NCBI GenBank assembly: GCA_965649825.1
Contig: OZ287701.1
Coordinates: forward strand, 547,101-611,100
Direction: 5' to 3'
Length of the DNA: 64,000 nucleotides
Source: Penicillus capitatus
Taxonomy: Eukaryota; Plantae; Chlorophyta
Part shown: piece after piece, positions 10,037-64,000 of the stretch
Position numbering within the stretch: position 1 is the first letter of the stretch
How the letters are laid out: each line of letters begins with the position of its first letter
Position numbers and translations under genes: made by a program
Notes under the pieces: model-generated
What the model saw: only the letters and a program-made list of their open reading frames with translations
Told to the model about the DNA's origin: nothing
Database searches by the model: none

Positions 10037-11263
10037 AGGATCCGTCCGATCCAGGAGGACGCTCGATTCAGAGATCTGCCGATCGAACCGTATACAGCAG
10101 CTTTGCATTTGTATGGCATCTATCTCTGTCCTGATTGGTTGGATCATTTCAGGCAGTCCGTTTTGTTGGGCGAGGGAATCGATTTCTGAATGGATTTTTG
10201 GTTTCTTCTCCGAGTGTTTTGCACTCTTCAACGTAGTATGTTCTCTCATAATGGATTGGTGTTGGACAGTAAGACATGAACACTTTATGAGTTGTTGCCG
10301 TCTGCTCACCATTGTTCAAAATGGTGTCTGGACAGTTTTTTTGTTTTGTCTATCAGCGCCTGTTGAAAGTGGACAACTTTTAAGAGGAATGATTGGTTTA
10401 CTTGCGTTGTGAGCGATTCGCTTCTTCTCGGTCACACCTATCACACTCTCGGATCCAATCGATTGATTCTCCGATCGCCTAAAAGAGTGTCGGATTCGTA
10501 TTGATTCACTGCTTGACTGGGTTTAGATCATCTGCGACTCCATGCACAATGTCGGATTTGAGTGAACGCTAAAGACTGTGCGGTGTGTTCCCTGAAATAC
10601 CGCTTTTCTGTGATAAACACATTCTGCAGAGACGAAGCTATGAACAGATCGATGAGATTCGCACTTCAATGAGATAGATCTTGGTAAGCAGGACGAGTGC
10701 TTCACGGAGTTTGTTCGGAAGGCAAGATCAAAAGAAACATCTAGCTTTGATGTCAACCAGGTTAAGGATACAGAAGCTTCTCAGCATGACATTTCATGGT
10801 TACTACATAAGCCTTGTGTAATCTGCCATCGTCTGGATTTCCTTCCAGTGAATGTTTCTGCCTCCGTTAACTCTCGATAAAGCGCTAAGTGAGAAGAAGA
10901 GCTTGTCAAGGTTCTCTCTCAATAGAGCACGATGTATGAACATCAATGACATTGCCCGTGGCTCACTGACATTTCCACTGTTCACGTTGCGTTTGACAAC
11001 TGGACAACCAAAGAGATACCAGTCACACGATGGTCATTTCTCCACTATTCCAGTCCATTGTTTAGATCTCACGAAAAACACACGACTCACGAATACTTCA
11101 TCGACGACCGTTTCAGCATACTAACATTGTGCGTAAGTGAGACGACCCTTTTGTTGTATCATAGAGAGTCCCTTCATTTACATAGTGCTCGAAATCGTCA
11201 TTCGTTCATGTGAGAAAACTCCGAACAGAAGTTCAATCCAGCAGCTAAACGGCCGGTACCTTT

Positions 11264-39820: not shown

Positions 39821-40764
39821 GAGCTGTTGTAAGAGCAACGGTGATTCTTTTTTTCAAGTCGTGCTTGAACGATTATTGATTGTTGTAATTGGTCATATGT
39901 TTTGCCACGATCGGCATTCTTGCTCGGCAGCTTTGCGTGTTTCTTCGTTGCAGTGCGCCACTCGATACACATACAATGCATCGTAAAATATTCACAAGGC
40001 TTATGTAGAAACCATGAAGTGTCATGCTATGAAGTTCTCTATCCCTAACTTGTTCGAGGGCAAGCGCGATGTCTCGTTTGATCTTGCCTTTAGAACTCCG
40101 TGAATCAGCAGTCCTGCTTATTAAGATCTCGTTGAAGTGCGAATCTCGTCGATCTGTTCATCCCTTCGTCTCTGCAGAATGCATTTATCGCAGCAAAGCG
40201 TTACGTCACGGAACACACCGCACAGTCTTTAGCGTTCACTCAAATCCAACATTGTGTGTGGAGTCGCAGATGATCTAAACCCAGTCAAGCAGTGAATCAA
40301 CACGAATCTGACACTCTTTTAGGCGATCGGAGAATCAATCGGCTGGATCCGAGAGTGTGACAAGTGTGACCGAGAAGAAGCGAATCGTTCACAACGCAAG
40401 TAAACCAATCATTCCTCTTAAAAGTTGTCCACTTTCAACAGGAGCTGATAGACAAAACAAAAAAACTGTCCAGACACCATTTTGAACAATGGTGAGCAGA
40501 CGGCAACAACTCATAAAGTGTTCATGTCTTACTGTCCAACACCAATCCATTATGAGAGAACATACTACGTTGAAGAGTGCAAAACACTCGGAGAAGAAAC
40601 CAAAAATCCATTCAGAAATCGATTCCCTCGCCCAACAAAACGGACTGCCTGAAATGATCCAACCAATCAGGACAGAGATAGATGCCATACAAATGCAAAG
40701 TTGCTGTATACGGTTCGATCGGCAGATCTCTGAATCGAGCGTCCTCCTGGATCGGACGGATCCT

Positions 40765-41383
40765 CTACACAGAGACCCAGTGTGTGTGATCGTATCCAGA
40801 CGTGTCTTTGATCTTAGTTTGGATTTCGAAACACGCGACGAGATCGTCTTCGTTACTCTTCACTTTCACGCGAAGCAGGACGTCAATGAACTGCCACAAA
40901 CGGAATGCAGTGCGCTGTACAGTTTCTTATGTCTTACCTGTCCGAAAAATTGCGCCAGATCTCCGACGTCTCCGGCGTCTGGTATCAACGTTTTGTAATT
41001 GATCGTGACTTTATCGCCTGTAATAGGGCATTTCGTGTAGTCGCACAGCTTGCGAGTAGATGCGTCTCTTCTTTCGTATTTCATTGAACGGAAGTCGAAC
41101 AAGATGAAGAAAACCTCCCACTCGAAAGTAGCGCCTGACTCCCTGACGCCATCTACAGAGAAATTGAACGTCTGCTCATGGCGGCTGTCGGCGGACCTGG
41201 GTTAAACGTGACGGAGACTGTCACATCTTTGCCAAACGCTGGTGGGTCGGGTACCACCTTCACTTCGGGCAGCTCGAAGGTTGGCGCATCGTCGCAAACG
41301 TTAACTTTAATAGCCGCGGCAACTGAGATGCAGGAAATTAGGCAGAGAATACGGGCCGCCCAGGAAACGGAGAAAAGTGTCAT
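40765..41383 (-). CDS. Secreted ML-domain protein (copy B)
   Basis: Mirror of 9418..10036 with the same intron positions and an intact frame. Confidence 0.85.
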
Positions 41384-42353
41384 GATAACAAAGCAGGTTC
41401 GTGAAAGAGGTGCCGTTCAAGAAACGGACAGACAAACGGAGAGTTGTTAAGGATGCGCCGACACTAAATGAGGCCCTCGTTTTGTGGTCCGCAATTGAAA
41501 GTTGCTGTGACAAGACAGCTGATGACACTCGCGAAACGACGCAAACAAAGATCATCCATCTGTCACGTCAGTGCGTACATAAAATCGATAGCTCTCCTGA
41601 CGTCTGCCTCATGTGTTCGCCTGTTAGAGTGTGGCGCGCTACGAATCAGGCATTGTGCCGCATTCTGAACTCACACGTCTGTATTCTCTTTTGTCGCGCC
41701 CCGCAGTGGAAACGCGCATGCCGAGTGTCACATTAACATCGGGATGGGATTGGCCATTGCATAGCTGTCACATCGTGCATGAAGCTTCTCACAGATTCCT
41801 TTCAGTCTATCCGTTGAATCTGCGCGTCGATGATCTCATGTGTTGTCTCTCACTGGACAGTTTTTGATCTTTGATCTAGGAACGAAACGAGGTTGCGACC
41901 CGAAAATGCTTTGTGCTGGGGATGTCAAACAAGCTGGAACGATGAGCTGAAATCATTTCATGCTCAATAAACGCTTTGATTACACGCAATGCCACTTCTA
42001 TGCGTTTCACGGGATCGGAAACTCTACATAACATGTGAGCACTGAACATGTGGATTGAAGGATCTTATCGACATTCAAATTCCAATGACATACCATTAAA
42101 CATGGCTGCGATAGTCTAGATGCGCACCCATGCTGCTGATAACAGAAGGCAAAGACAATTAACGAGTAAGATTTATACAGACGTAAACTGAAAAAGCAAA
42201 CCGTCATCCTTCATCAGAAGACGGCTGAAAGAATGGTTGAGTTTATAGACTGCAGCAGCACTGACGTTCATCAGTGCAATTATTGAAGTGTACATTAGAG
42301 ATGATCTGAGTTCTCCTTTCATTACTGGCAGGGAACTGAGTTCAAAAAGAGAC

Positions 42354-45300
42354 TTATGTTTTTAAGGGGTCATTGAGAGAAGCGAGTTCAGAACGCAGCT
42401 TCCAGAATCCAGTGGTGTCCCTATCCGCCCGGCCCGATTGCCAGATGACCCAGAGCTTGTGAACCAGCCAGGTGTCTTCATCTTCCTCCAGATCGTGGAT
42501 TCCTTGAAACCATATCCTCAAGTGTTTTGCATGCACGTCCAGTATTCTGTGGACGCCTAACCACAGGCGACAAAACAAGAAGCCCATGAAAATGAAATTC
42601 AGAGTGGCGCAGATGGTGGAAAGCGCGTTGATGGAGAGCATGGATGCTTCTACGTCGGTGATGGATGTCGCAATGGCATAGACGAAGAGAGCCATCAGCA
42701 GCGATGTTGCCTCCATCGAGTTGTAACTGATTCTGTTGTTGAACCATATCCACGACGACGCCAGTTGATCAGCACCCAGCCATCTGAGAGTGCTGCCCAT
42801 GCAGGAAGGCAGCGTCTTGTGAATGTCTTCGCTGTCAATCGGCTGAACGAAGACATGCATTAAGTAAGATATAAAAATCACAATGAACACCAAACCCAGT
42901 CTGATGTTCGTCGTCACATTGATCGGCGAGAAAACAATGATGACGAACGACAGCGTTATTGTTCTCATTGCCACGAAAATGTTCCAGTACAGAGCCAGTC
43001 CTGTGGAACGGAGTCCAGAGTACAGGAATCCGTACTTGTGCACGAAATCGACATCCTCCAACAGGTCTTGCTGTTTACCACGGTATATGATGGATGCCGA
43101 GTAGCCGAGAACAACGAGGCAACAAAACAACAAAGTCAGAGAAAGCACAGATACCCACAAATGAGGCCCCTCCATGTATTTGATGGACGAGTCTTCTGAC
43201 CAGATGAAACTGTCGTTCAGGAGATCGTAGTGATTGAACTCGTGATCGGAGGGCTTCTCTGGCAGCTTGGCAAAGCTGACAACGCGGAACAGTTCACCAG
43301 CGATGTCGATAACGTAAGTGAAAAACCCAAAAAAGAAAATGAACTGGACATGTGGAGTCACCCCGTCTTCAGTTGATCGATCTCCTCGTCGTTTGAGACT
43401 GAGCCTCCACAATGCAAACACGAGGACATAGAAGAGAAGTATGACCGAAGGGAAGAGCGTCCGAATCAACAGAATCATCAGCGTCAAGCCTTTCTCGTGC
43501 TCATGACGGTATTCATTTGAGAAGTTGCATTCGAAGGGGTGCAAGCGGATAATGTTGCTCATCCTCGCCGCTGCGCCTACGATTCATCGTCGAATGGTGA
43601 GACTGGGCCACAGATGAATAGTCTGGCTACCTTGAACGCGGAGCATCGCTTTCATGCCCGTTTCCCACTTGACGCCAAGAGAAAAGGCCAAACTGCACAG
43701 TTGCATGTAGTCGAACAGTATCTGCGAGAACAATGCACATCAGCATTGCTTCTCAACGAGAGCTTTCTTTACTCCATAGATCGTCAAGACAGAGCCCACT
43801 GCGCCGCTGAAGTCAGGACAGTTAGAACCATCCGTGCACACGCGACATCTGTGCTGATCTGTCGTTGGGTCGGATCGCGACAAGCGTCTGATCTCTATAG
43901 CTCGCTGTTCGGAGGTGGAAGGTCCGGTCGCCTTCTCATCAAGCGATTGAGCGTCTTTGACTGGATCTGGATGGTCTGTGCGGTACTGGATGAGTGGCTC
44001 CGACGAACTGTCTTCAGCGTCCGATGAGCTTCTCGAAGACAAGGATGGCTTATCCAATCCGAGGGCAATCCTCAGTCTCTGCGAAGCCTGGATGGCAAGA
44101 TCTGTGTGCATGCTTCTCCAGGCCAACCACAACTTGAAAGAAAAAGCAAAAAAGAACAAAACTGCAGAAGCTAGGGTCTTAAGAACAGATACCAATCTGT
44201 TGCCGTCGCAAGGCTCGCATTGGCCGCTTACTGATCGCCCGTGTTCATCGGCGCATGAGGCGCACAGTGTCCCGTTGTATGCACCTGAACACTGTATATA
44301 GTCTTCTGTAAAGTCTTCCGGCTCTCTGTGGCTTTGGTTCCATGTTCTCAGTTCTTCTGAGACGCGCGTCGTGTCTTCATAGTACTCGACCAGATCCCTT
44401 GTTCTGTTCTCTCTTTTGCATGCTCCATCGATGGGACACTTGATCATCCGAGGCGAGAAGGGCGTCGAGTGCCAGTACTCTTCCTCTGGCACTAATGCCA
44501 TGGTTCCAACACATATCCCATGATCCTCACACTCTCGGCAGTCGTCTATCGTCGAGAAAGTGTAGTACGAGTAGTTGCATCTAGAGCAGGTCGCCTTGTC
44601 TTCATCCATGAGCTCTCCGTGTTGACAGTGTGTCGTGCCGAAGAGCAGAGATGTCGACAGATTCCTTCCGTCCTTCGAACGAATCCATAACGTATCACTA
44701 ATGTCTGCTCCGACCACGCTTGTGTTGTCGATGCACACAATCCCGTTCTTAGCGGCGTACTCGATCGTTCCGCTGATGTGTCGAGATTCGAGCAACACAG
44801 CAAGATCTACGAGTCACACGTGAATTGTGAATCGCACTGCAGCATGATCTCACCGCTATCTTTTTTTGGCCATTCGATAATTTCGCCATAGATGTCTCTC
44901 ACAGAGATCCTGATCTTACTGGCTGATAATTCTGAGCTCTCTTCAACCTTGGAAGGGACGCCCACAAGATCTCCGGGAGATAGCGACAAAGGTCCATCGA
45001 CGTTTTCTATCTCCAAAGACACAGCATCCGTCCCGACGTCATTCTGTCTGCTATTCTTGCCAATCTAAATGACAACAGAAAAAGTGTGATCATCAAGGTG
45101 GGAAATGAACTCACGAAGATGTGATTGTTCGTCACAGTAAGGCATCTTCGATTTTCTGTTATATGTCCTCGGATGACGTCATTCCCCGTTTCATCATGGC
45201 AAACATATGTGAAGCTTGATATTGAACCCACATACATTCCGCCTCCACTGTGTTTGGCGGTGTTTTGGATCACATTCACGTCAGTGAACATTACGTAACG

Positions 45301-48300
45301 GCAGCCGTCATTCGGAGGCACTGTAGAAGGACAAGGAGTATTGTTGAAGTGCACCCGGTCTTCATAGCTGGCTTCAAGGTACATGCCACCTAGTAACCTT
45401 TCTCAGTTTGCCTTCCACACAGAGAAAAAATCTACCTCCAGTGACGGCCTTACTCATTGATATCTTGATCTCTTCCAGCACCACATTCACACTCGATCCA
45501 CCCCTGGTGTTATTAAGTGCAAGGTAGAAGCCACCTCCTTCGCCTTGGCGACGATCCTCAACATGTGGCAGGTACTGGTCACTCTGTTTCCTCGCGTCGA
45601 GCCATGATTGAACGACGGAATCGCCATCGGTTTTCAGCCTTTTTAGACTGAGTGCTCGGTTGCCTGTCAACTTCCATTTTTTTATCTAAAGGCCAGAAAA
45701 AGTCAGGAGGGACACAATGGAGTGCTTCTTACATTAATGAATTGAGACAGTTCGTGTTCAGAACTGCTGTAGACAGCACCACCTAGCAGAGCTGTGTTGT
45801 TCTCATACGTGTAACAGGGAAACACTCCACAAAGATTATTGACTTCTCCGACGTTTCTGAAACATATCGCTCCTCCAATCGAAGCGATATTCTGCTTGAA
45901 GAAGATATTTGACTCCCAGTCCGAGGACAGACTCCCTCCCTCGAAGGACATGGCACCGCCAGCGTTCGTTGCCAGATTCTCAGTGAAGTGCACCCAGCAG
46001 TAAGTTTGGATATCGATGCTGCCTATTACGCAGCAAACACATGCTGCGCGATGCAATGTAGAAATGCGACGTACCGCATTGGATGCAAGCAACTGCGCCG
46101 CCGGTCATGAGAGCAGTGTTGGATGTGAACCGTATGGTGTTCAGGGAGTGTACGGATCCCTTTTCAATCTCAAAGCGGGTTCCCCTTTGAAGTCCAAGTG
46201 CACCGCCCACGAGTGCACGATTCGATGTGTAATTGGCCATCCTGACTGTCACGCTTGTTCTTCGAAATGCACATGCACCGCCGACGTCTGCCGCATGGTT
46301 CTCCTCGAACATGGAGTCAGCAATGTTCACATCGCCGCCAACAGTCGAAATGGCACCGCCTTCTTCTGCTCGGTTGCGACGCATGATGAGCTCATTGCAC
46401 GTCAAACTGTCGGCGATCGACATGATGGCTCCTCCACTGCCACCAGCTGTGTTGTTTGTGAAGGTACAGTTATCCAGTGTCGCCCAATCTTCGACGTAAA
46501 GAGCACCTCCATCCCCTCCAGCATGGTTGTTTTCAAAGATGCACTTTTCAAATGAGCCTTTGGTTAGCAAGATCGCGCCAGCTATCCCTTCGGCCGTGTT
46601 GTTTATCACACTGCAATTGACAAAATACGCTTCGTAGACATCGAGTACACCTGCTTTTAGAGCAATGTTGTTCAGAAAGCTGCAATTGGTGAAATGCGCT
46701 ATCCCTATATCCACGGTGCAAATCCCAGTGCCGTTGACCACGTTGCTATCCAGCTTGCAGTCCGTGAAATTTGCGTCTCCTTTGACAAAAACTGCCCCTA
46801 CATCACGATCGGCGGAGTTCCCAGAGAAACGACAGGTTTTGAAAATCACGTCGCCGAACACTGCGATCGTTCGATCAAGTCCAGCACTGTTGTTCGTGAA
46901 GTCGCAGTTTACGAAGCGCGCGCTTCCCTTAACATAGACAGGTGAATTTGCCACGGCAACGTTGTCCTCAACGATGCAATTGACCAACGTCACATCACCA
47001 TCGACGGAGATCGCAGTGTTGTCCCATCCCGACCAGTTGTTCGTTATGTTGCAGTCTTCAAGGCTGGCACTGCCTTCAACGGAAACCGCGGCATTGCTTC
47101 TCCAAGCTGTATTGTGCTTCAAACTGCAGCGACTGAACTTGGCGGCGCCTGTCACGGTAAGCGCGCTGTTGCGTCTGGCGGTGTTATTCGAGATTTCGCA
47201 ATCATGAAAGGCAGCATCGCCGACGACGTAAACGCCGCCGCCGTTGTTGGTGGCATTGGTGTTCGTGATGCTGCATTGACTGAAGGCCACGGTTCCTGCA
47301 ATCACGACAACTGCCCCTCCGTCAACGCCACTGTTTCCCTCAAACCGGCAGTGCTGAAAGCTAGGATCATTGTTCACACATAAAATGGCCCCTGCAAACT
47401 TCATCGCCTTGTTGTTGCGAAACTCGCATCTCTCGGCCTTCACAGGGGCGTTCCGCACGTCCACAGCACCTCCAATGTCGGCACTGTTGTTTGCAAACCG
47501 CGTCTCGTTCAAGATCAATGCGCAGTCATGAACTGATAGCGCGCTCCCTCCCAGCCCTTGTGGTAGCGGGTTCTCGAATGGAAGGATTCCTGGTGGAACA
47601 GTTAATCCCTTCTTGGAGTTGTCTCTGAAAACGCAGCGTTCCATGGCTATCGAGCACCCTAGTCAACATCGCCATGAGGACTGGTGATGCTTCCAGTCGC
47701 TGTTCGTACCTGTCGACTGCCAGTCCTCGTCGGAATCGTCCAAAAGCGCTGTCCTCGATCTGCGCTCTGATCCCAAGACTTCGATGGCGCTGAAAGCACC
47801 GTTGCACCCTCTGAATACCAGAGATTCGATGCGAAGGTTTCGACAGTTTCTGCGTACAAGAAACCGACTGTCCGTATGGCGGCAGGCAGCGTCTGAGATG
47901 GAGCACCTGATGGAGAAGATGCTCCCTTTTGCAGGACAGAGGAGCGTCGTCGACGGACGGACTCCGCGGATGGTGACGTCAGATACGCCTTTGATGACAA
48001 GCAGCTCCGTCAGTTGCATGGTGTCCACGTCGAAGACGATCGTCTGGTTGCTCTGAAGCTGCGCGACTGCCGTCTGCGCCTCGACGGCCGTTTTGACGCG
48101 GACCTCTGTCGACGTGGCATGCACGCCACAGCCACCTAAGCATCAAATGGTCGTTGAGCGGCGAAACCAGACAGCACAGGCAGCTGGCATTGCTGCAGAC
48201 TTCGTGCAAGAAAGTTGCCACGAAACACCTCACCTCGGTTCAGTAGAAGCAACAAAATCAGAATGTGCACCAAGAGCGTCCTCGGCGGCAGTTGGTACCT

Positions 48301-48312
48301 TCGTGCAGACAT
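42354..48312 (-). CDS. Pmp-repeat beta-helix / Cys-rich / multi-TM receptor-like protein (copy B, longer ectodomain)
   Basis: Mirror of 3023..8459. ATG at 48312. The 554-aa beta-helix ORF 45980-47644, the 352-aa Cys-rich ORF and the 402-aa TM ORF join in frame at the splice sites I checked. Confidence 0.85.
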
Positions 48313-49540
48313 TTCTTCCTTTCGGCGAACACTGCCGTTCCCTTTGCTGTCGCCCGAACGAAAAGTGCTTGTGCGGTAGAACATAGAGAACTGCATAGAA
48401 CAATGCGAACGAACAAACTGTTCATGCACGTCGAGGCGAGCTAAAATCATAATCGCTTCACTGATGATGGATTCATGCACGTCGTGGTTGAATGTACTTT
48501 GACTGGACGCGTCAATCAACAACGCTGAAGTCGCGTAAGTGGCACATCGACCGGTGAGGGCAAGTGAGAAGACAGGTGAGACAACACCTCTAAAGAATAA
48601 CCGATGCAACGCCCAAGACAGGCCTCCTGAATCTTCGCGTTCTGCTTTTATCGTGTCACGCCTCTCGACATGCGTCGACACGATCAGATTTCCAGCGGGG
48701 CGACCTAACACCAACATCCATGAATTAAGCTACGCACGCGAATTATCGACGCTGCAACTGCTGACGTCGTCTTCTGCAACTCTTGATCGCTCGACCATGC
48801 CGCCTACGACGTCGGCGTAGCACACCGTGTTGAAAGTGCGTATTGGATGTGAAAATTCCAGAAGAGCTGCTTTCTTTCGCTAGGGAATCCTCATACATCT
48901 GAATCTTAGATCACTCTACGTAAAGAGAGTTACCTTGCGAAGATCCTGTCGTGTCGCAAGGTCACACAAACGCAGTTCTCGTCATTTCTAAACGTCAAGT
49001 CCTTCGCCGCGCTGTAAAGATGGCGTCGATGCAGATGATGTTCTGAGCGACAATCGAAACTCCGCCTCTAAGATCCCCACGTCGCTTTCGGCAGACAGTC
49101 AGATGACGTAAAGTGCCGCGTACCACAATTCCAGCTGCTATGCGTTCAGCCTTGCTCTCTTTTGTTTAATCTCAGGTTGGTGATTAACAACCGTCTCCAA
49201 AAAGTCAGCTTGCATTCACGACTTGTTGGCTTGCAAGAAAGGCAAGCGTATTGGAAACACAAACAATCCAGAGATCCACTATTCTTGACATCTGAAGTGT
49301 ATACATACTCACATCATTGACACGTACGTGCTTAATGAAACGTGTAGATGACAACAGACAGACTCCAATGTGCAACAGGTGAGGTTGGAAGGATACGAAT
49401 TGTGACTCCGACAACCAGACGATGGACGTATTTTTTTATTAGATTAAACGAATTCTCGTATCCCAGGATGAATGAACCGTATCGATTGCCAAACATCTCA
49501 GAATCTACAGACGTCGACAGCAACATTCAGCATTTATTTG

Positions 49541-50131
49541 TCAGTTGAGAAAGAACATGAAACAGTCACATTGCAAGACATCTGTCACGATGACGACCAT
49601 CAAAGCTACTGCGCCGAAGACAAGGGAGAGAAAAGCAGAGGCACAAAAGAATAGCATGAGTGCGACACCCGAACCGTCATTCTCTCTCTCCAACTCGTCG
49701 CCATTGCACACATAACCGATAGCACACTCCACGTACTCCCCGAACAGAGAAGTGTAACCTCGGCAGACCACATCCGATGAATCGTTCAGTTGAAATTGCA
49801 GCAGGACGCCGCCGACGACACTTCCGACGGCGACAACGAAAACGTAGACCAGAAAGGCGATCAGGGGGCTGTTTCCATTTCGGATTTCTTGTCTAAAACG
49901 AATGATTCCCACGACCCAGACGACAAGGGCTATCACGCCAAACGCAATGGAAAGCTTATTGAACGCGGCTCCAATTGGTTCGTCTACTCGTAGACTTCCT
50001 CCGATGATGTTGTAGTCCGACGGGTAGGTCTCATATAGGCATGGAAAGAGCGTGGCCTCGACTCTGTCACCTTCAGACCCAGGACAAGATTCCCGTCCGT
50101 CCCCGTGCAACGCACACTGCCAAACTCTCAT
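49541..50131 (-). CDS. Small orphan 3-TM protein (copy B)
   Basis: Mirror of 1211..1801, same length, open frame. Confidence 0.6.
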   Translation of the reverse strand: MRVWQCALHGDGRESCPGSEGDRVEATLFPCLYETYPSDYNIIGGSLRVDEPIGAAFNKLSIAFGVIALVVWVVGIIRFRQEIRNGNSPLIAFLVYVFVVAVGSVVGGVLLQFQLNDSSDVVCRGYTSLFGEYVECAIGYVCNGDELERENDGSGVALMLFFCASAFLSLVFGAVALMVVIVTDVLQCDCFMFFLN

Positions 50132-51064
50132 CCTCGACTGCAATCCAGATGCCAGATGCGATAGAAGAAAGGGTTGCAGTTTGCCGGGCGACGGATGACA
50201 TGCGAGCGATGTCGCAGTCGTTTATTTTTCTAGACGTCGTTTCATGCGGCAGGCGGACCGCAGTTCGGCGTCAGGTCCGACGAAATTGAACTTACTGAAT
50301 CTGACGTGGCTCTTTGTACTCAACCGTCTCGTGTGGAAGTAACCTGTGCATATTCTGCTGTCATTGCACTCTCCCAGCTGAGAGCAGTGGCGTGGACCTG
50401 AATGACTGTCACTTCAGTGTTCTTGAACGGTCTTTGTGAGTTGCCAAACGTGCAGATTCAGTCACGAAGTGCTGCTTGTGCTCGATGCCTTAAATCCGTG
50501 TGTTGTTGTTCTATACGATCTTCTCTGAAGTAACAAAAACACACTCTCCCCGGCCTTGGGCCTCTCTGGACGCATTCTCCTTTCTCCGAGCTCATCTTGC
50601 AATCGAAGGTTGACAACTGTGATCGGGCGCGACAGTCACGGCCGGTAGATCAACGATCCGCTCGTCGACGACGTGCAAAGACGTGAAGTATCCGAAGATC
50701 TCTGCACGTGTTTCTTCTACTTCCTCTGATTAGCGAGATTCCGTGCAGTTCGTACAAGATATGTGTCGAACGATTGTATGTGTCGAACGAAACTTCTAGA
50801 CTAGACCTCGATTCCGATCTCCGTTTTTCTCCACAGTCCATATGCACGTTGCTCAAAACAGGGAGAAGGTCGCATCACGCTGATTACTTTGTTCCTGCAC
50901 TAGATGAGCGTGCTGGATGCATTGAAGCATATCAGGCCTCGTCGATGCATGAGACCGACTTCTTTGGCTCATGGATGCTTTGACTCTAGCGTTTCTATGT
51001 TGTGTTCTACTGTGGAAGACCTATGTAAACGTGTACAGCTATCTTTGCCTCTTCGGATGCTTCG

Positions 51065-54000
51065 TTGTCCCGTCATGCTCGCCGTGCAAGAACGCGCTAC
51101 ATGCCTGCCATCTTGGCTGTCAGCACAATCGGACCTTACGCCGAAGCCGACTGCTTAACGCTTGTTGTACGGAGAGGTTACCTAGATGCCGAAGACTTTC
51201 GACGAGGAGACGAGGGAAGACCTCGGCGACTCACTCGACACCAAGAAAGAGACCCCCTTGCGGCTGCAGCTCCTGGTGAAGACAACAAGAAATCTTCGCT
51301 GTTAAGAGTTGGAGTACGTCGACAGGAAACGTTGAAGGCTCTCAGGAATGATGACGAATCCACAGTGGGGGTTGGCTTTGTCGGAGAACTGTCGACAAAT
51401 GCGACATACTACGATGACAAGGCGAAACGTGATTATCTTGTACAGGGCTCGACACTTCTTCACTGGGCAGCGGCTTTCAATGCCCGCCGAAGTGTTGAGG
51501 TTGGTCGCTCCTCGAGCGGGGGGAGTGTTCCCTCGTCGGTGTCGGTGTCTGTGCATGGCTCACAGTGGATGTCTTCAGGTTCTCAAAGCGAAGAATGGTG
51601 ATATTGGCAGAAAGAACAAAGACCATCTGACTCCGTTGCACATTGCAGCGAGATATGGTTCGGAACTGGTGGTCAAGGTGAGCAGTACACACAGCCCGAG
51701 TTTCTTACTGTGCTAACACAAACGGCAACTGTGGGCGAATTGCTGCGAAGCAGTTTTCTTTGCTTTCTGCTTCGGAAGACAATAAAGTGACCAGAACCGT
51801 CGCATAGTCATTGCCTATATCTGCCATTTTTGTCTTTCTGTGGAAATCCTAGATAGAAAACGGTGCCTGCTTTAGGCTCTGTTAGATTTCGGGGTCGACA
51901 TCGATGCTGTTAGCATCAAAGGAGAGACGCCACTGAGCCTGTCGTCGAACAACGGACACCTCGACGTCACTAAGGTAACCCATGTGCCAGTATGCTGACG
52001 ACTTCTCATACACATGTGGACTACAGATTCTCTTGGAGAAGGGAGCGAACCCTGACTCTTCGGACAGGAACCATGAAACCCCTGCACACAAAGCCGCAGT
52101 TTCTGGACATGCCGAGGTCGTCAAGGTAACGTCTAGCTCTGTCTATGACCTGCTGCACACCATCGTGTCATCGACAGGCACTCATCGAAGCTGGAGCGCG
52201 TATCGAGGCGAGGGATCTCTATGGACAAACGCCTTTGCACGTGGCGGCGAATCAAGGACGAAAGGATATCGTCGAGGTCAGTCAGTCCGTCTTCTCCCCC
52301 AAGTTGATCATCAAATGCCATCGAGAACAGATGTTGATCGGTCTACGAGCCCATGTCGAGGCCATTCGGGAGGACGGGTGGACTGCATTGCACGTCGCAG
52401 CAGAGAACGGACATGCAGAAATCGTGCAGGCGACAGCACCGTTTCGCGATTCACGAACTTACAGATGGACGGTGTAGGTGCTTGTTACCAACGGGGCGGA
52501 TGTGAATGCAAGGAACAACGAAGAACAGACACCACTGCTCATCGCCTCGGCGTCTGGACAGCTGAATGTCGCGAGAGTACTAAACCTCGACCCCTGCTCC
52601 TCTCTTTCATGTGAAAGGTGTTCAGATGCTCGTCGAAAATGCAGCAGATAAGGAAATGGCCGATGCAAATGGATGGACGCCGTTGCTCGTAGCGGCAGAC
52701 GAAAAGCAGTTCGAGATTATGAAAGTGAGTTCCTCGTGCCCAGAGATCTGTTGGACGCTCATCGTCGATTAGTTGCTCATCGATGTGAACGTCAACATGA
52801 ACGAGGCGACGACCACAGGATGGACACCTCTCCTCGTTTCGTCGGTAAACGGCGATGCAGAGGCCGTCGATGTGAGTGGAGTTGTGTCCTGTATCTGCTC
52901 TGATGTGTCGCCGTCAGTGGCTGCTAGATCACGGAGTGAAAATAAATGCCGTCGACAAAAATGGAGTGACGGCTTTGCACAAGGCGGCACAGTTCGGAAG
53001 TGTAGAAGTAGTGGAGGTGCGTTTTCCGCCGACAGTTAACATATAAGGTCGGGCTGTCTGACAAGATGCTTATCAGCAGAGGGGCAAAGGTTTTGGCGGT
53101 CGACGTGGAAGGACAAACAGCGCTGCATTGTGCATGTTTTTACGGCAAGCTAGAGGTTGTCAAGGTGCGCCCGTTTGCCTCGTGATGCGTCATGCAAAGC
53201 AAAGCTATCATAGGCGCTTGCAACTGAGGACAGTGTAAACGTCGTCGTTGATGATGGCAATCTTCTGGAGTATCATAAAGAGCGAGATCGTTTATGCTCG
53301 GAGGTGAATGGTATGTCGATTCTCCTCTTCTGAAAGTGTTTTGCAGCTATGGATCTCCTCGTCTTTCTGTGCATTCATACGGCCACGCAACGGAATGACG
53401 CCATTGTACATAGCTGTTACAAGGTGATACCATGACCTCGTAAAGGTGCATCTCACTGAAGCTTGTGCAATACTCTAATGAGATCAACAGGAACTCTTAA
53501 AAAGAGGCGCAGATCCAAACGTCGGCAATGACTACGGCTGGTCTCCAGTGTTTTACGCAGCAGAGAAAGGTCTTACGGATGTCGCGAAGGTGAGCTTGAG
53601 AAGCATCTCGCAGATTCTTGGCCTGAGCACAAGTTTCCTCAGGCTCCTCTCGATGCCGGCGCCAATGTCGACGCTAGTGACGAAGAAGGGAACAAACCGC
53701 TTCACTCAGCTGATGGAAATGTTACCGCGGAGATGGTCAAGGTGAGCACCAAACACGTTGCTATGCACGGTGCTTGACCAGTTGTGCTGTCAGGTTCTCC
53801 TGGACGCCGGAGCGAAGGCCGACGTTGTCGGCTTTTTCGGATCGACACCCCTTCACCTCGCTGTTAGCAATGGCAATACAGAGATCTTCAAGGTGAGCAC
53901 ACCGAATACGTTTCTTTCATTTCGCTCAACCAGTCTACACTTAGGTTCTCCTGGGCGGCGCAGCTAACGTAAACGCCGCGAATGAAAAAGGACGCACATC

Positions 54001-54229
54001 GCTTCATATCGCCGCAGAAGATGGCGAGATAGAGATCGTCATGGTAAACACCAGATACGTTATTTCTCATTTCGCTCGACCGGCCTTGCTTCAGGTTCTT
54101 CTGGACACCGGGGCATCCAAGTTAATCACCGTAAAGGGTAAAATACCTTTGGATCTCATTGGCACAAAAGCTAGCACACCTTGTCCCAAAGATGTTCGGT
54201 CTAAGCTCGAAGACTTGTTGGCCCCTTGA
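51065..54229 (+). CDS. Ankyrin-repeat protein, about 17 repeats in 18 exons; one exon has an in-frame TGA; true start uncertain
   Basis: Successive exons translate to TPLHIAARYG, TPAHKAAVSGH, TPLHVAANQG, TALHVAAENGH, TPLHLAVSNGN etc. Phase-0 introns; terminal stop TGA 54227-54229. Confidence 0.9.
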
Positions 54230-56543
54230 ATCTTTTGCTCTAGTTCTAGCAGTTTTTCATCCCTCTAGTGCCATTCTGTTTTCTTCTTCAAGATGCCTGT
54301 TGCGGAGAGGGGAATAATGTCTGTAATCTGTTCGGGCGGGTTGTGTGACTGTGGGTGCGCCGCATCTGCCATTCTTGGTAGAGAGGTTTTGAGACATCTA
54401 TGGCCTGTTCCTTTTCCTGCCTGCGACTCCAGACGAACTGCTTGACTCTCTAAACATTCTTCTACAGATCCTCATCAAATGAGGAGCTTTCGGTGCATTT
54501 GCGCCAATACAAACATACAGCAGCTCTCGATTTGCAATCCTCTTTCTCGGCAGTCTAGTCGGGAAGGATCGGATTCGTAAGAAAACTGCTGATTGGGTTG
54601 TCTGCATCCAAACAGATTTGTAAACAAATGAGAGAGCTTCCTAGACCGTTGCCTTCCTAGACCGTTGCACTTGTCTGTCTCAGAACACCATCGTAATCGA
54701 CGCGCAATAAGTATTCATCCAGCCACTAATCGGTCTACGTCTCTGCGGACAGAACGTTCGATTTCGCGAATGGTAAAAAACTGTCCACCGAAGTTCGGAC
54801 TTTGCTCGGATTCAGAGGATGACGCTGTGTTGCATCCTGGATTGCATGTCGTCAGTTGAAAGGAAGACCTTTCCGTCAGCTACGTGCATGTTGGCAGAGA
54901 TATGTGTGCCCCGCTGAAACTGCGAAACCGTCGATGGGATCGCACATATGATCTGGTCTCGTTCTCGATCGTCCACCGTTTCGCTTTCTCGTCGCTTGCG
55001 CGTCTTTGAGCTGCAGTCAAAACGACTGCGCGATCATCGCCGGCATCTGTCTCTCCCCCAGAAGCGCGTCGCAATAGTACGGCCATTGCGCACCGTGGAT
55101 CTTAGTTTCGGATAAGGGTCCTGATACAGGCTCCATATGCGGCCTTTCGGCCAAAGCGGTTGACACGTCGCTTTCTCATTGTGGACACTCTGCGTTTACA
55201 GACAGAAGTTTGGAATGCGATCGTTGGCGTCTTAACACGACAGAGATCCAATGGGTCATTCACGAAATCACTGATCGCGATAACATGAAGTTCTGCAGCT
55301 GTACGCGTTGCATGGACAACACGGTCGAACCCGCGTCCGTCTCGATCGTCCGGTATCCGTCTGGCCGCATGGACACCGCATGACATCCCAGGTTCTGATC
55401 AGCAAGGTAGCCGAGAGAATGCGATTCGAGATACAGACACGGGAGAAGCACGTGAGTGGTTTCTCGACTGTACTCGAGACACACCTATGCACCTGTTTCG
55501 AGACGGCGGGTGGTTCCGGGGTGTTCGATAAACGATTCTATGAGAGCGAGAGGCAACAAACGTCGAATCACGTATAGACACTGCAGATGTCGAGAGATCG
55601 GGGGGACTCGGTATCGACCAAGGACCGTACGTCGGCCGCGCGACGTCGTTCTCTCCGAGAATCTCGCTCTGTCAAGAGAGGAGGTTATCCGTGTTGTAGG
55701 ATCAGCGTCACCCGCTGCATCGCGATTCCGTCCAGTGAACCGTTTCAGTCAAAACAGAAGAATATTACGCGTATCGTTCGTTCACATCTCTCATCGCAAT
55801 CGCCAGAGCTATATGCATACACACAGGCCATGCGCGTCCTCTGTATCTGTGCCCATCCACACATCCTCCTGATCGTCGTTCCGTCAGAAGCAGTTCATCT
55901 GCATCGCAACATCGACTTCGACGACTTCGTCCGTGGCGACCTCGACACGCTCTCGAGACTTGCTCTGACTCGCCCCCCTGCATGATGTGCCGCGGATGAT
56001 GTGACATCTTTCGACATCGTCGTCTTACACTTCGTCGCGTCGAGTCTTCTTTCGGCGCTCCTCCCGGCCGTTCATCGTCTCGAGCGCATCTCCGATTCGC
56101 TGCAGGTCTCTCTACAGCGCATAGAACCGTTCGGCGATCCGCGACAAAACCAAGACGCCACGGTCAACGCCATCAACGCCCGGAGAGACGCGAAGGAACG
56201 CCGACGCCGTCGGCGAGTGTCGGCGGCGCGATGTTGGAGCATCCGACGACGCCCTCTCCATTCGGATGCGACGTGAACGAACATACACAACGACGATACC
56301 TGGACGTCTTCGTGTGTCGCCTGCATTTGAAAAAGGTGTTTGAAGTCGAACGGCAATCCCTTGGTCCCCTTCCGCGCGCGCGTTCGACTCTTCGTCATGA
56401 TCGCGAAACGCCGCTGTCGTTGATGACGTCACAGCGAAATACAATCGATCGCGTCCGAGACAAGAATCCAACAGCAGCGTCGTTGCGGTACGAAATGACA
56501 GGCGTCGACGTCGACATGGCCGACCGTAGATGACGTCCATCTA

Positions 56544-57987: not shown

Positions 57988-59871
57988 GTCCGAGCCAAGT
58001 CAGCGTTTACGCAGTTACGAAAGTAACAATCCCTCTACCGAGGACTCATGTTTCGACGCGGCATTCGACAGATGTGGGATCCTGTCAGCGTCGCGAGGAC
58101 GTTTCCCTCGCTCCCGCCTCGTCATCGCCGCCACGGGGAGACGTCGTCAGGCATCTTCTTCAGAGGACACGGCCGTGAGCGGGCTCCCCGAATCAGATCG
58201 CATGTGCAGAGGAGCATGACAAGCGGGGACCATCCGTCGTTCCACTCGCGTGGATCCTCTTTCAGTCAGGCAGAACGGTCTCGCTCCCAGGCTCTCGGAG
58301 GCGACTGTGCAGAGGTGCTCACGTCTTCTCCCTGCTACAGCTTTCAGCCCTCTGCTCATGGAGTCTCCGAGGAAATCTGCGAGGTGGAGGTCGAGGCGCA
58401 TGGCCTCGTGCAGATCTTTCGGACGGGAAAGAAGTTCGCAGCGAGGAATCTGGAGCGAGTGGGACCGTTCTCCCGGAATCTTGACGGTCCCGCTCTACTG
58501 CAAGGGCTTCTGCGATCCGGGAGAGGCGACGAGAGACCTGGCCCGCCTGCCGCCGGGGGGCCGCACGTCATCGCGTTCACGTTCTGTCCGATCCGGCTCG
58601 CGGCGCGGAGAGACTCGTCTTCGTGGGCGATCTTGGTCTCAGAGGCGGCGGAGACAGAGACCCTCCGTCCGGCAGCGATTCGCCGGGACGCCGGGCTGCC
58701 TCCCGGTTTCGGCGGAGGAGGGACCATCGTCTGGTCGAGCCTTACATCGTTCGCTACTTTGTCGGGAGGAAGGACCAACTCAGCGAGATGATTGAAGCGT
58801 TCGAGTCGAGCGACGAGTCGCTTGTCGTCAGGGCGATCGTCGGCCCGGGCGGCATCGGGAAGACTCAGCTCGCGACACGGCTGTTCGACCTTTTCAGGGG
58901 AAAGCGCCACTACGACGGCGCGTTCTGGATACCTTCAAGCTCCAGAGAGACCCTCACTGCCACGTTCCTGCAAATCGCAGAGTATCTGAGAGTTCGCACC
59001 GACACCGAAACCCCGGAGCTCATCAAACGTGTTCGAGAAGAGCTCGGACGATCTCACTGTTTCTACGTCTTCGACGACGCTCTGAGTTTCGAACTGATAC
59101 GCGAGTACTTTCCTGCGACAAGCGGACATGTCATCGTAACGACGAGGGAGGCTGGAGGCGGAGACTGGGAGAACAACATGCTTCGACTGGGACCGTTCGA
59201 CGAAGACGAAGCTCGGATTCTGGCAGAGAGACTCGAATGCGGCAGGTCAATGCGGCCGAACGATCTAGACGACTTGATGGACCTGTTGTCTCGGATCCCG
59301 CTGGTCCTCGCTCAATTCTTCTCCGTGATGCGGGACGAAGAGAGGTCGAGCCCCGCCGAATGGGTGCAGCGTCTGCTGCGGTACGAAGTCACGGGACGAG
59401 AGGCCAAAGCGATAGAAGAGCTCTCAGCGACGCGAATCGGCGAAGAAGCGAGCGGAATGGTCTTCGTGTTCAACTGGAGCGTGCAGAGGATTTCGGAGGA
59501 ACCCAACGACCTCGGCCCCCGTTCGCTCGACATTCTCGCCAAGCTAGCGCTGCTCGATCCGAACGGTGTGCCCGTCGAGTGGATACACAAGTGGCACGAA
59601 TGTGGTGATGGACAGTCCGGGGAAAGAACGCAGAATGCCATAAGGATCCTTGAGCGCTTCTCTCACGTCGCGTGGGACACAAAGACGAATCAAATCTACA
59701 TCCACGCCGAGAGGCAACTTTTAGCGAGACACCTTCTCCTAAAGAGCGACGACAGTGTTTCCAGTCACGTTCGAGAATCCGAAGAACAGCACAAGAACGA
59801 GATCGGAGACCACGTGAAGACCATAGTGGATTCAATCGGACGATACATTGACGGGTGGAGAACGGACCGTT

Positions 59872-60172
59872 GTCGTGTTAAGGCGTAATGCTCACAATAA
59901 TGCGCTCATCTACCTACACTTGTATCAATCTCCAAGTGACAGGTCGTAGGTTCTCTATAGCTTCCCATCCAAAAATAGACCCGCGGCTATACGTCGCAGA
60001 TTCCAAGTAGATTCCGGAATCTGCGCAGAATATTCCTTTTTGTGACTTAATAAAGTACCCTATAAAAGCGTTGTAGATGTACTGATCTCGTCTTTCGTTT
60101 ATCAGACTTTACGTTTCAAAGGTTTACGTGCGCCCACCATTCAAATTGTCTCCATCTAAAACTCTACGCGAC
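59872..60172. mobile_element. 301-bp AT-rich insertion with a 6-bp target-site duplication (ACCGTT); MITE-like non-autonomous element
   Basis: ACCGTT at 59866-59871 and 60173-60178. Short imperfect terminal inverted repeat GTCGTGT...ACGCGAC. Removing the insert and one TSD copy restores the frame (WRTDR-SNQELWSSLARNG). Confidence 0.75.
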
Positions 60173-60339
60173 ACCGTTCGAACCAAGAACTTTGGTCCTC
60201 GCTCGCAAGAAACGGGTCGGCACTCCTGAAACACTGCGCGAGCTCGGAGGACACTGGCGTGGAAATAAAGTTACTCCAACACACAACACGGTCGTACAGA
60301 GAGATATGCATGTTTCAAGAATCGCTCACCAATGCTCAA

Positions 60340-62600
60340 AAAGCACTCGAGACGTGCGAGCGCCTTCACGGCGACGCAGATCATCCGGACACCGTCCAGT
60401 GCATCAAGAGCTAGGCCTTCGGACTCGACCGAACGGGGAGAATCAACGAAGCCGTGCCGCTCTACAAGAGGGCCCTCGACATGTGCGATCCCCTTCACGG
60501 CGACGCGGACCATCCGGACACCGTCGATTGCATCAAGATCTACGCCATCGGACTCGACCGAACAGGGAGAATCAACGAAGCCGTGCCGCCCCTTCACGGC
60601 GATGCGGACCATCCGGACACCGTCCAGTGCACCAAGAGCTACGCCATCGGACCGAACAAACGGGGAGAATCAACGAAGCCGTGTCGCTCTACAAGAGGGC
60701 CCTCGACATGTGCGAGCGCCTTCACGGCGACGCGGACCATCCGGACACCGTCCAGTGCATCAAGAGCTACGCCATCGGACTCGACCGAACGGGGAGAATC
60801 AACGAAGCCCTGTCGCTCAGAAAGAGGGCCCTCGACATGTGCGAGCGCCTTCACGGCGACGCGGACCATCCGGACACCGTCCAGTGCATCAAGAGCTACG
60901 CCATCGGACTCGACCGAACGGGGAGAATCAACGAAGCCGTGCCGCTATACAAGAGGGCCCTCGACATGTGCGAGCGCCTTCACGGCGACGCGGACCATCC
61001 GGACACCGTCCAGTGCATCAAGAGCTACGCCATCGGACTCGACCGAACGGGAAGAATCAACGAAGCCGTGCCGCTCTGCAAGATGGCCCTCGACATGTGC
61101 GAGCGTCTTCACGGCGACGCGGACCATCCGGACACCGTCCAGTGCATCAAGAGCTACGCCATCGGACTCGACCGAACGGGGAGAGACAACGAAGCCGTGC
61201 CGCTCTACAAGAGGGCCCTCGACATGTGCGAGCGCCTTTACGGCGACGCGGACCATCCGGACACCGTCCAGTGCATCAAGATCTACGCCATCGGACTCGA
61301 CCGAACGGGGAGAATCAACGAAGCCGTGCCACTCTTTAAGAGGGCCCTCGACATGTGCGAGCGCCTTCACACCGACGCGGACCATCCGGACACCGTCGAT
61401 TGCATCAAGAGCTACGCCGTCGGACTCGAACGAACGGGGAGAGACAACGAATCCCTGCCGTTTAGAAAGAGGGCCCTCGACATGTGCGAGCGTCTTCACG
61501 GCGACGCGGACCATCCGGACACCGTCGATAGCATCAAGATCTACGTCATCGGACTCGACCGAACGGGGAGAATCAACGAAGCCGTGCCGCTATACAAGAG
61601 GGCCCTCGACATGTGCGAGCGCCTTCACGGCGACGCGGACCATCCGGACACCGTCGAGTGCTTCAAGAGCTACGCCATCGGACTCGAACGAACGGGGAGA
61701 GACAACGAATCCCTGCCGTTTAGAAAGAGGGCCCTCGACATGTGCGAGCGTCTTCACGGCGACGCGGACCATCCGGACACCGTCGATTGCATCAAGATCT
61801 ACGCCATCGGACTCGACCGAACGGGGAGAATCAACGAAGCCGTGCCGCTATACAAGAGGGCCCTCGACATGTGCGAGCGCCTTCACGGCGACGCGGACCA
61901 TCCGGACACCGTCGAGTGCTTCAAGAGCTACGCCATCGGACTCGAACGAACGGGGAGAGACAACGAATCCCTGCCGTTTAGAAAGAGGGCCCTCGACATG
62001 TGCGAGCGTCTTCACGGCGACGCGGACCATCCGGACACCGTCGATTGCATCAAGATCTACGCCATCGGACTCGACCGAACGGGGAGAATCAACGAGGCCG
62101 TGCTGCTCGACAAGAGGGCCCTCGACATGTGCAAGCGCCTTCACGGCGACGCGGACCATCCGGACACCGTCGAGTGCTTCAAGAGCTACGCCATCGGACT
62201 CGAACGAACGGGGAGAATCAACCAAGCCTTGCCGCTCTACAGGAGGGCCCTCGACATGTGCGAGCGTCTTCACGGCGACGCGGACCATCCGGACACCGTT
62301 GAGTGCATCAAGAGCTACGCCGCCGGACTCGACCGAACGGGGAGAATCAACGAAGCCTTGCCGCTCTACAGGAGGGCCCTCGACATGTGCGAGCGTCTTC
62401 ACGGCGACGCGGACCATCCGGACACCGTTGAGTGCATCAAGAGCTACGCCGCCGGACTCGACCGAACGGGGAGAATCAACGAAGCCTTGCCGCTCTACAG
62501 GAGGGCCCTCGACATGTGCGAGCGCCTTCACGGCGACGCGGACCATCCGGACACCGTCGAGTGCATGCGCACTTATGCTGCTTGTTTGTCAAGAATCGGA
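60340..62600 (+). repeat. Coding tandem repeat, 129-nt unit (43-aa TPR): 15 intact units plus ~2.7 degenerate 5' units
   Basis: ttcacggcga recurs at 60721 and 60850 (period 129). Unit RINEAVPLYKRALDMCERLHGDADHPDTVQCIKSYAIGLDRTG. Confidence 0.97.
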
Positions 62601-64000
62601 AGGGACAATGAACTTTGCTTTACATGGAGAGATTGAACAAAATGCGTGAACGTTTCGGTGACATTTAAATTGTTGGATGTTGCCTAGCCTATTTTACTTG
62701 TTTTCCTGTTGAATGGCATGCTAAGGCTGTTGAAATTCTTCGGTTTGAATTCACTGTGTCTCTTAGCGAGAGAAACATACAGGTCAACAATTGCTATCAA
62801 TGTTGAAAGGATTTTTTCGTAAAAAGAAGTCCCTATTGTGTTCTTTTGCGTCTTAGTTGTCGGACATCACCGTTCGCCTAGCATTAACTTCGCGCCGGAT
62901 TGGTGTTCACTCGATCGCGCTTACCATGAGATTTATATAGCCTCTCTACCAAATCACAAGGTCTTATGTCTGCATGGCGCCACCTCTAGCTTTGCTTACC
63001 GATTAGAAGTTTACATTCTTTTTGAACAATACACCGCATCGATCTCCGGGAAGTCTGTCTGCCGCCTACTCACTACTAGTCTCTAAGTCGCGATTTATCA
63101 TCGATACATAAATGCTGGCATCTGTTTGTTTTCAAGGTGTTATGCGCCTCAAAAGATTCTTACTTAAATTCGTTAATCTTTAAAGAATTACAGAGGAAAG
63201 GGTTGCAGTTGTCCGCCAACTCGACATTTTCTTCTGGGTGAAGGCGAGCTCGTTCTCGACGTAGGTGTCTTTTTCCTTGCGGATGACTCTACCGGCGTTG
63301 TTGTCCAAGTTCACCACGTGTAGTGCTTGAGACCTACCGTATGGATCACCATTGACCAATAGTCGGACGTAGAATTGCAGGACAGTCGTCAATGCCAATA
63401 AATGGCGGCCGACTGAACGACAGTTTTTCTCGAAAAAACTATCTGCTATCTTTCTCGATCTAAATTGACGCTTGAGATCTCTTTCTTCGCAGCGCTCTGA
63501 CAGAAGATTGGTTTATTCTTGATCGAGTCGTTGTTTCCTTCGAAGATAACGCTGCTACTAACGGGCATGACACTGACAGACATTAAGACTGAAGACGATC
63601 ACTTTGCACCCCATCATCCAGTACCCTGCACCAAGTACTAATTGATGCACACAATTTCGCGCGCACTCCTCAGTTTGGCAACGAGATCTTTCTTTTGTAC
63701 TTAGGTGCACACCGACTGACCATTTGTGTCGCGCGTTTACTTCTGAGGTTTTATCTATATTCTTGCTGCGGCTTTTTGCATTGCATACAACACAACCATG
63801 ACACTGATGCAGTTTAAAGTTCGATCGAGGAATGACTGCTTGTCTAAATTCCTTCGTGTGCCAGATACGAAAAACTGCAGTGAGTGTTTTACACAGGAAT
63901 ACTGCGATCAGAGCCTCCAATCGTCGCGGCAAAGACACCGTGCATGTTGACGACAATGCTCACGATTAAAGAGACTGTGCATTTGCAAGTCATTCTTTTA

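Follow-up and report, generated by a model that had tools for sequence, protein, structure and literature searches.

The ankyrin gene and its exons

The stretch of DNA described here, referred to as the window, comprises 64,000 nucleotides (nt) of contig OZ287701.1 of Penicillus capitatus (GenBank assembly GCA_965649825.1, positions 547,101 to 611,100) and forms part of a 724-kb contig in the ENA metagenome assembly ERZ25074695. Close to its right end, on the forward strand, it carries a gene for an ankyrin-repeat (ANK) protein, almost all of whose exons are one repeat in length. The gene belongs to the right arm of an inverted segmental duplication of ~15.5 kb, where it occupies the outer end. 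It is probably an ANK gene of a kind typical for its lineage, which was built by duplication, is weakly constrained and, in the window copy, no longer functions.

The organization of the gene is highly regular. An earlier note on this sequence had listed 16 repeat exons between 51,579 and 54,043, and a script check of all of them found that 15 are exactly 99 nt long and one (53,214-53,303) is 90 nt long. All 16 are directly preceded by AG and directly followed by GT, save exon 5, the donor of which is GC (52,430). Exons E01-E05 are located at 51579-51677, 51876-51974, 52027-52125, 52178-52276 and 52331-52429, exons E06-E10 at 52478-52576, 52626-52724, 52773-52871, 52918-53016 and 53066-53164, and exons E13-E16 at 53491-53589, 53643-53741, 53794-53892 and 53945-54043. 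All of these are 99 nt long, are in phase 0 and correspond to one ANK repeat length. The remaining two, also on the forward strand, are degenerate. The 90-nt exon E11 encodes 30 amino acids and is unrecognizable as ANK past its first half, but it is present in nearly identical form in all three copies of the gene compared below (the window, its left paralog and a second contig). E12 (53,347-53,445, 99 nt) has the translation LWISSSFCAFIRPRNGMTPLYIAVTR*YHDLVK, which holds an in-frame stop. The coordinates in the note were right, but the note had overlooked this stop codon, the degenerate state of E12, the GC donor and the duplication in which the gene resides.

The gene reaches beyond the interval listed in the note at both ends. 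On the 5' side there is a tentative first coding exon of 133 amino acids (51,101-51,499, forward strand), whose start codon is uncertain. Its open frame is continuous with the phase of the repeats, and it ends in a partial ANK repeat, '...GSTLLHWAAAFNARRSVE'. On the 3' side, a terminal exon on the same strand (54,095-54,229) encodes a non-repeat C-terminal tail of 44 amino acids followed by a TGA stop. The gene has 16-18 ANK repeats.

Each 99-nt exon encodes, in phase 0, a unit of 33 amino acids of the form xLLxxGAxxNxxDxxGxTPLHxAAxxGHxxVVK. The Pfam repeat register starts at position 15 of the exon, and the intron site is constant, being located after position 19 of the Pfam Ank repeat, inside its second helix (helix 2). 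Although it has the length of one repeat, each exon is circularly permuted relative to the structural repeat. Constant exon length and phase 0, the properties by which a repeat-per-exon gene is recognized, are shared by the window gene, its paralog, the copy on the second contig and an ortholog. The description of the gene in the earlier note, as an ankyrin gene with 15 exons of 99 nt and one of 90 nt, in phase 0 and with introns at a constant repeat position, thus agrees with both the script check and Pfam.

Membership in the ankyrin family was judged with the Pfam models PF00023 and PF12796 at their gathering thresholds, by the G-x-TPLH-x-AA...G...VV..LL..GA signature and by tandem repeats of ~33 residues. 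The protein pieces on either side of the E12 stop were searched separately in Pfam. The upstream piece matches Pfam Ank at 2.8e-83 with 269.5 bits, compared to a gathering cutoff of 21.1, and the downstream piece matches at 6.6e-29. The gene is therefore an ankyrin-repeat protein gene. Neither piece, nor the first exon, contains a Pfam domain other than those of the ANK families, and no signalling domain is among them.

The introns are 43-54 nt long, with one outlier of 198 nt (51,678-51,875). The lengths of 11 of the 17 spacers are not multiples of three, and several of the others contain in-frame stops. Because the spacers cannot be read through, the frame stays open only if 16 AG...GT segments in a row are removed. 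Chance is far from accounting for such a series, which suggests that the introns really are spliced, although the collections searched yielded no RNA that documents the splicing. A length of ~50-60 nt is normal for introns in this genome, as shown by the gene for Mg-chelatase H (ChlH) in the window, which has a GT-AG intron of ~60 nt (37,271-37,330). A strict YTRAY branch-point motif is in range in 6 of the 17 introns; it was not used as evidence for splicing. Intron 5 (52,430-52,477, forward strand), the sequence of which was checked, reads GCGACA...TAG. Its non-canonical GC donor is ancestral and presumably functional, because it is kept in all three copies as well as in a related taxon, where it reads GCGATA. 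An assembly artefact was rejected as the source of the exon architecture, since three contigs, drawn from two assemblies, show it. Scanning the window for Rfam families and tRNAs gave no match.

Copies of the gene

The right arm of the inverted duplication extends from 39,993 to 55,564 of the window, and the left arm from position 8438 of contig L003 to about position 10,818 of the window. The arms flank a spacer of ~29 kb, which holds ChlH and an eIF4G-like gene. The identity between the arms is patchy, ranging from 74 to 98%. An inverted paralog to the left of the window had been anticipated in the earlier note, and it was recovered there, on the minus strand of the left arm just outside the window (contigs L001/L003). 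The paralog is 95.7% identical to the window copy, collinear and complete, and it matches that copy in its 16 repeat exons, in their order and in the GC donor. Three-way site patterns among the copies are mosaic, which suggests exchange between the arms by gene conversion.

A second contig of the same assembly, L006, carries a further copy with the exon order of the window. Its identity to the window in the spacer is 98.6%, so that it represents a haplotype or a strain. An ortholog was found in a related alga (ENA assembly ERZ26696514), the ChlH of which is 97% identical. Exons of 99 nt, introns at the same positions and the GC donor are retained in the ortholog. The order of the exons is identical in the window, the left paralog, L006 and the part of the ortholog that survives. 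Another copy, the fourth, was sought by means of a 402-residue open reading frame (ORF) of the arms, but the 37-kb contig containing it ends short of any ANK gene; this contig joins a duplication arm to the NB-ARC-TPR paralog described below, not to an ANK gene.

The host was taken to be a green alga in the earlier note, and ChlH bears this out. A ChlH tree groups the window with Bryopsis with a support of 100/99, and Bryopsis is the closest named taxon, at 82% in ChlH. By this measure the host of the gene is an ulvophyte, a siphonous green alga related to Bryopsis.

Disabling changes

The in-frame TGA of E12 is at 53,425-53,427 on the forward strand. At the corresponding site the left paralog reads GGA (Gly), whereas the TGA is also found in L006 and is, for that reason, not a read error. 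A disabling mutation in a formerly coding exon, a mark of an unprocessed (duplicated) pseudogene, is thus present in both the window and L006. Two ways around the stop codon were considered and rejected. Splicing at the GT that results from the G-to-T change would give a 77-nt exon and a frameshift. A non-standard genetic code does not account for the codon either, because TGA is also the terminal stop of the gene and long ORFs, such as that of ChlH, read normally.

The other copies are damaged at different places. The left paralog lacks 12 nt of the core of E08 and a single nucleotide of E15. The L006 copy combines the E12 TGA with two 1-nt deletions, both of them in E09, and its first exon contains indels. 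The damage is greatest in the ortholog, in which a long terminal repeat (LTR) retrotransposon has been inserted into intron 1, the acceptor of E02 is lost, 1-nt deletions shift the frame in E03 and E04, and everything past the middle of E07 is deleted. On the strength of these changes the ortholog is clearly a dead gene, a pseudogene. In the related alga, the region that precedes the ANK gene is filled by three LTR retrotransposon copies, encoding a gag-aspartic protease, a reverse transcriptase and an integrase (L008 1-14,055 and L009 1-15,431). One of the three is the copy inside intron 1 of the ortholog, and all are absent from the lineage of the window.

Homology searches with the 463 residues upstream of exon 11 returned generic ANK matches only, with identities of at most 39%, and neither an ortholog nor a transcript-derived product was among them. 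A search of 1.84 billion representative proteins with the 44-residue terminal exon gave no match, and neither a product nor a transcript of the gene was found in the public protein collections that were searched.

Growth of the repeat array

Most of the exons are old, being 40-55% identical to each other at the nucleotide level. E13-E16 with their 51-53-nt introns are the youngest cluster of units and have a period of ~151 nt. At the site 53,637-53,638 (forward strand), in intron 13, L006 has an extra 151-nt unit between E13 and E14, which consists of a 99-nt ANK exon (ALILNQADVNFTFFGGSAPLHRAKLNAHTETVK) and a 52-nt intron. This unit is absent from both the window and the left paralog. Units 13b-16, each comprising an exon and an intron, are 58-66% identical, compared to ~50% for other pairs of units. 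Similarity between introns (z = 3.5-6.7) is confined to the E13-E16 cluster, and the top five of the 120 intron pairs, ranked by similarity, are all formed by I13, I13b, I14, I15 and I16. Because the strongest intron similarities fall in the cluster of the most alike units, the exon and its intron were duplicated together.

A different type of change is seen in the left paralog, where the last ~10 nt of the intron upstream of E15 and the initial 33 nt of that exon are identical to unit 14, unlike E15 of the other copies. This tract of ~43 nt originated by conversion between units. The suggestion in the earlier note that units are movable therefore holds for one unit indel and one conversion tract, but not for the order of the exons, which is fixed in all copies.

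The array was probably built by tandem duplication of a unit of ~150 nt, consisting of a 99-nt phase-0 exon and a minimal intron of ~50 nt positioned in helix 2, and such duplication presumably also produced the older units. With phase and repeat register identical at every junction, whole units can be gained or lost in frame when adjacent introns recombine unequally or slip, and short tracts can be copied from one unit to another. The periodic design is most readily understood as a footprint of array growth and the way in which ANK repeats are typically encoded in this lineage, rather than a device for programmed diversity.

Constraint on the sequence

The mismatch between the window and the left paralog is 3.2% in exons and 4.2% in introns; between the window and L006 it is 2.3% and 2.5%, respectively. 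The ratio of non-synonymous to synonymous substitution rates (dN/dS) is 0.50 between the paralogs. Between the taxa it is 0.37 in the four frame-intact exons, with p-distances of 0.197 for exons and 0.219 for introns. Among the codons that vary in the three copies, 27 have non-synonymous and 17 only synonymous changes, and 7 of the 27 replacements hit core framework residues. Compared to neutral expectation, the exons have diverged about as much as the introns, yet dN/dS is 0.5 and the replacements are biased towards the binding surface. This pattern fits a formerly functional gene under weak constraint, now in decay; it is no demonstration of diversifying selection.

Functional state of the locus

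The locus is most likely weakly constrained and either decaying or already non-functional, because the window copy has the TGA, the sister copies have different lesions and the ortholog is dead. The window copy, one of two in the inverted duplication, would itself be non-functional. Several observations weigh against this reading. The E12 TGA is the single disabling change in the window copy, where all 17 splice-site pairs and the other exons are intact, and E12 is a symmetric exon, the skipping of which would preserve the frame. One of the E09 deletions in L006 lies within a run of A, and indels in the consensus of metagenomic long reads could partly be assembly errors. At the six canonical binding-surface positions of the DARPin type there are 10 of the 27 replacements, compared to 1 of the 17 synonymous changes (p ~0.02, in a small sample). 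Because of this enrichment, and because dN/dS is below 1, some selection has acted on the gene recently.

In a rival reading the gene is functional, with E12, and perhaps E11, being skipped or intronic and E10 joining E13 in frame. The intact splice sites and other exons of the window copy, the dN/dS below 1 and the bias of replacements towards surface positions speak for it. The product would be an intact ankyrin protein with ~14 repeats and ~640 amino acids, and the phase-0 design would buffer the gene against nonsense and frameshift hits in single repeats. All exons are in phase 0 and are multiples of three, so that the frame is preserved even if both E11 and E12 are skipped, the frame-disrupting lesions of the window (E12) and of the left paralog (E15) each lie inside one skippable exon, and the TGA has persisted in two diverged contigs. 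However, E11 and E12 have normal-looking AG and GT sites and E12 is intact in the left paralog, which implies that they were coding exons. Furthermore, the first exon and E09 of L006 are frameshifted too, the ortholog is beyond doubt a dead gene, and the tail of the gene was not found in transcripts or products in public protein data. Rescue of the gene by skipping is less likely than its decay.

The earlier note had proposed that the array generates diversity, a combinatorial binding repertoire being produced by alternative splicing, by frequent exon shuffling or by both, as has been proposed for Ectocarpus. Symmetric exons of equal length are indeed the architecture that Zambounis et al. (PMC3341825) linked to shuffling, and the whole-unit difference in copy number, the inter-unit conversion tract, the modest enrichment of replacements at binding-surface positions and the presence of an NB-ARC-TPR gene 4 kb downstream are in line with such a system. 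The note had also held that an identical exon order in all paralogs and strains would speak against its proposal, and this is largely what was found, the order being the same in the three copies and in what is left of the ortholog. Moreover, most exons are old and have not been exchanged recently, the array lacks a fused signalling domain, be it NB-ARC, ROC-COR, kinase or another, disabling lesions are present in every copy, dN/dS does not reach 1, and other ANK genes of this design give no hint of an immune function. In view of the identical order, the lesions, the dead ortholog, the weak constraint and the domain content, the proposal is unsupported and improbable. Still less credence can be given to a wider version, in which bryopsidalean ANK genes would systematically have symmetric one-repeat exons and would exploit them by regulated exon skipping or by somatic or unit-level recombination. 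In that version damaged repeats would be bypassed and variable binding surfaces produced, as a counterpart in green algae to the repertoire that has been proposed for LRR and TPR genes of brown algae, and the locus and the adjacent NB-ARC-TPR gene would be part of a rapidly evolving recognition cluster.

The periodic introns might, alternatively, have been gained secondarily, by introner-like insertion at the same motif of each repeat in an intronless array. The introns are near the minimal size for the genome, judging from ChlH, and most of them have no detectable similarity to each other. Nevertheless, intron and exon similarity go together in the young units 13b-16, the polymorphism observed is that of an entire exon and intron unit, the introns share no common element sequence, and both taxa have the GC donor and have their introns at the same positions. 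Secondary gain is the least probable of all these explanations, and growth of the array by duplication of exon and intron units, followed by decay of the locus, accounts better for its structure.

Comparison with other repeat-per-exon genes

One-repeat exons are an already known kind of architecture, to which this gene adds another case. In the brown alga Ectocarpus, LRR-ROCO and NB-ARC-TPR genes encode one repeat per phase-0 exon, of 72 nt for LRR and 126 nt for TPR (PMC3341825), so that the precedent mentioned in the earlier note is borne out. The Ectocarpus arrays contain inactivated repeats, and the loci are found in duplicated regions together with pseudogenes (Zambounis et al. 2012, PMC3341825). 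The window gene resembles them in its exons of constant length and phase, here of 99 nt, in the gain and loss of units in frame, in the degenerate or inactivated repeats of the array, and in its location in a duplicated region with pseudogenes. The repeat type is different, however, being ANK, as are the introns of ~50 nt. Unlike the Ectocarpus receptors, the ANK array is not fused to a ROC-COR GTPase or an NB-ARC domain. Its exons are mostly old and in a fixed order with no sign of intense shuffling between loci, and there is no overall signal of diversifying selection (dN/dS 0.37-0.5).

The same periodicity is found in another green alga. The gene model 'Ankyrin-3' of Tetrabaena socialis (P0059, GCA_002891735.1), a member of the Chlorophyceae, has ~9 exons of 99 nt that are one repeat length each, as here. 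The Tetrabaena introns are at the canonical repeat boundary, so that its exons begin with 'xGxTPLH', and they are hundreds of nucleotides long, whereas in the window gene they are inside helix 2 and the exons begin with 'xLLxxGA'. Because the registers of the introns differ, the two periodic structures would have arisen independently. A search of the literature on the register of ANK exons provided general background only (PMC1553488).

A second ANK gene was found in the related alga. Its six consecutive intact 99-nt exons (L009 19,294-18,432, minus strand) are separated by introns of 48-57 nt, the register of which is that of the window gene. It represents another locus, has only Pfam-level similarity to the window gene and has no lesions in the part that was seen. 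The region as a whole (L009 18,432-20,207, minus strand) contains six or seven 99-nt exons and directly follows a trypsin-like ORF of the same strand. The ORF and this ANK gene could constitute a single gene for a protease-ANK fusion.

In the canonical ankyrins of vertebrates, ANK1, ANK2 and ANK3, the membrane-binding repeats are largely encoded by 99-bp exons, equal in length and in frame. The canonical animal ankyrins ANK1-3 have 24 ANK repeats followed by ZU5-UPA and death domains. The window gene, in contrast, belongs to an unrelated lineage, has 16-18 repeats and lacks ZU5, UPA and death domains, and with best matches of at most 39% identity no orthology to these proteins is detectable. 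The animal gene P0081 turned out to be an intronless CARD-ANK gene and is uninformative for this comparison.

Neighbouring genes

The window contains nuclear genes of a photosynthetic eukaryote, including ChlH and the eIF4G-like gene. An NB-ARC gene (58,048-62,636, forward strand) is located 4 kb downstream of the ANK gene, outside the duplication. Its NB-ARC part is followed by 17 head-to-tail TPR_12 units of 129 nt (43 amino acids), which are ~91% identical to each other and are not interrupted by introns. A paralog in the same assembly (L012 15,919-19,679, minus strand) is 91-95% identical. This array resembles those of fungal NLR proteins with highly conserved internal repeats, and it differs from the TPRs of Ectocarpus, in which each repeat has its own exon.

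Both arms of the duplication contain ORFs with Chlam_PMP repeats and matches to right-handed beta-helix proteins (45,980-47,644, minus strand, and 3,735-4,778, forward strand), a family that is unusual for a green alga. Both arms also contain the intact 402-residue ORF mentioned above (7,251-8,459, forward strand, and 42,354-43,562, minus strand), which has no Pfam match. Its relatives were found only in the contigs of this alga, as a cluster of five members and additional matches with 88% and 54% identity. The gene calls stored for the contig are of the bacterial style; they split ChlH in two and miss the ANK gene entirely.

Implications

Bacterial-style gene calls on metagenome contigs miss genes of this type, and a tidy array of exons can hide a stop codon; both should be kept in mind in annotation. 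The locus provides a clean, dated example of solenoid arrays that grow and shrink by units of an exon and an intron, between haplotypes as well as between paralogs. The same periodic design is present, with different intron registers, in two lineages of green algae. If the design were used to produce a diversity of isoforms, the idea of a receptor with one repeat per exon would extend from brown to green algae.

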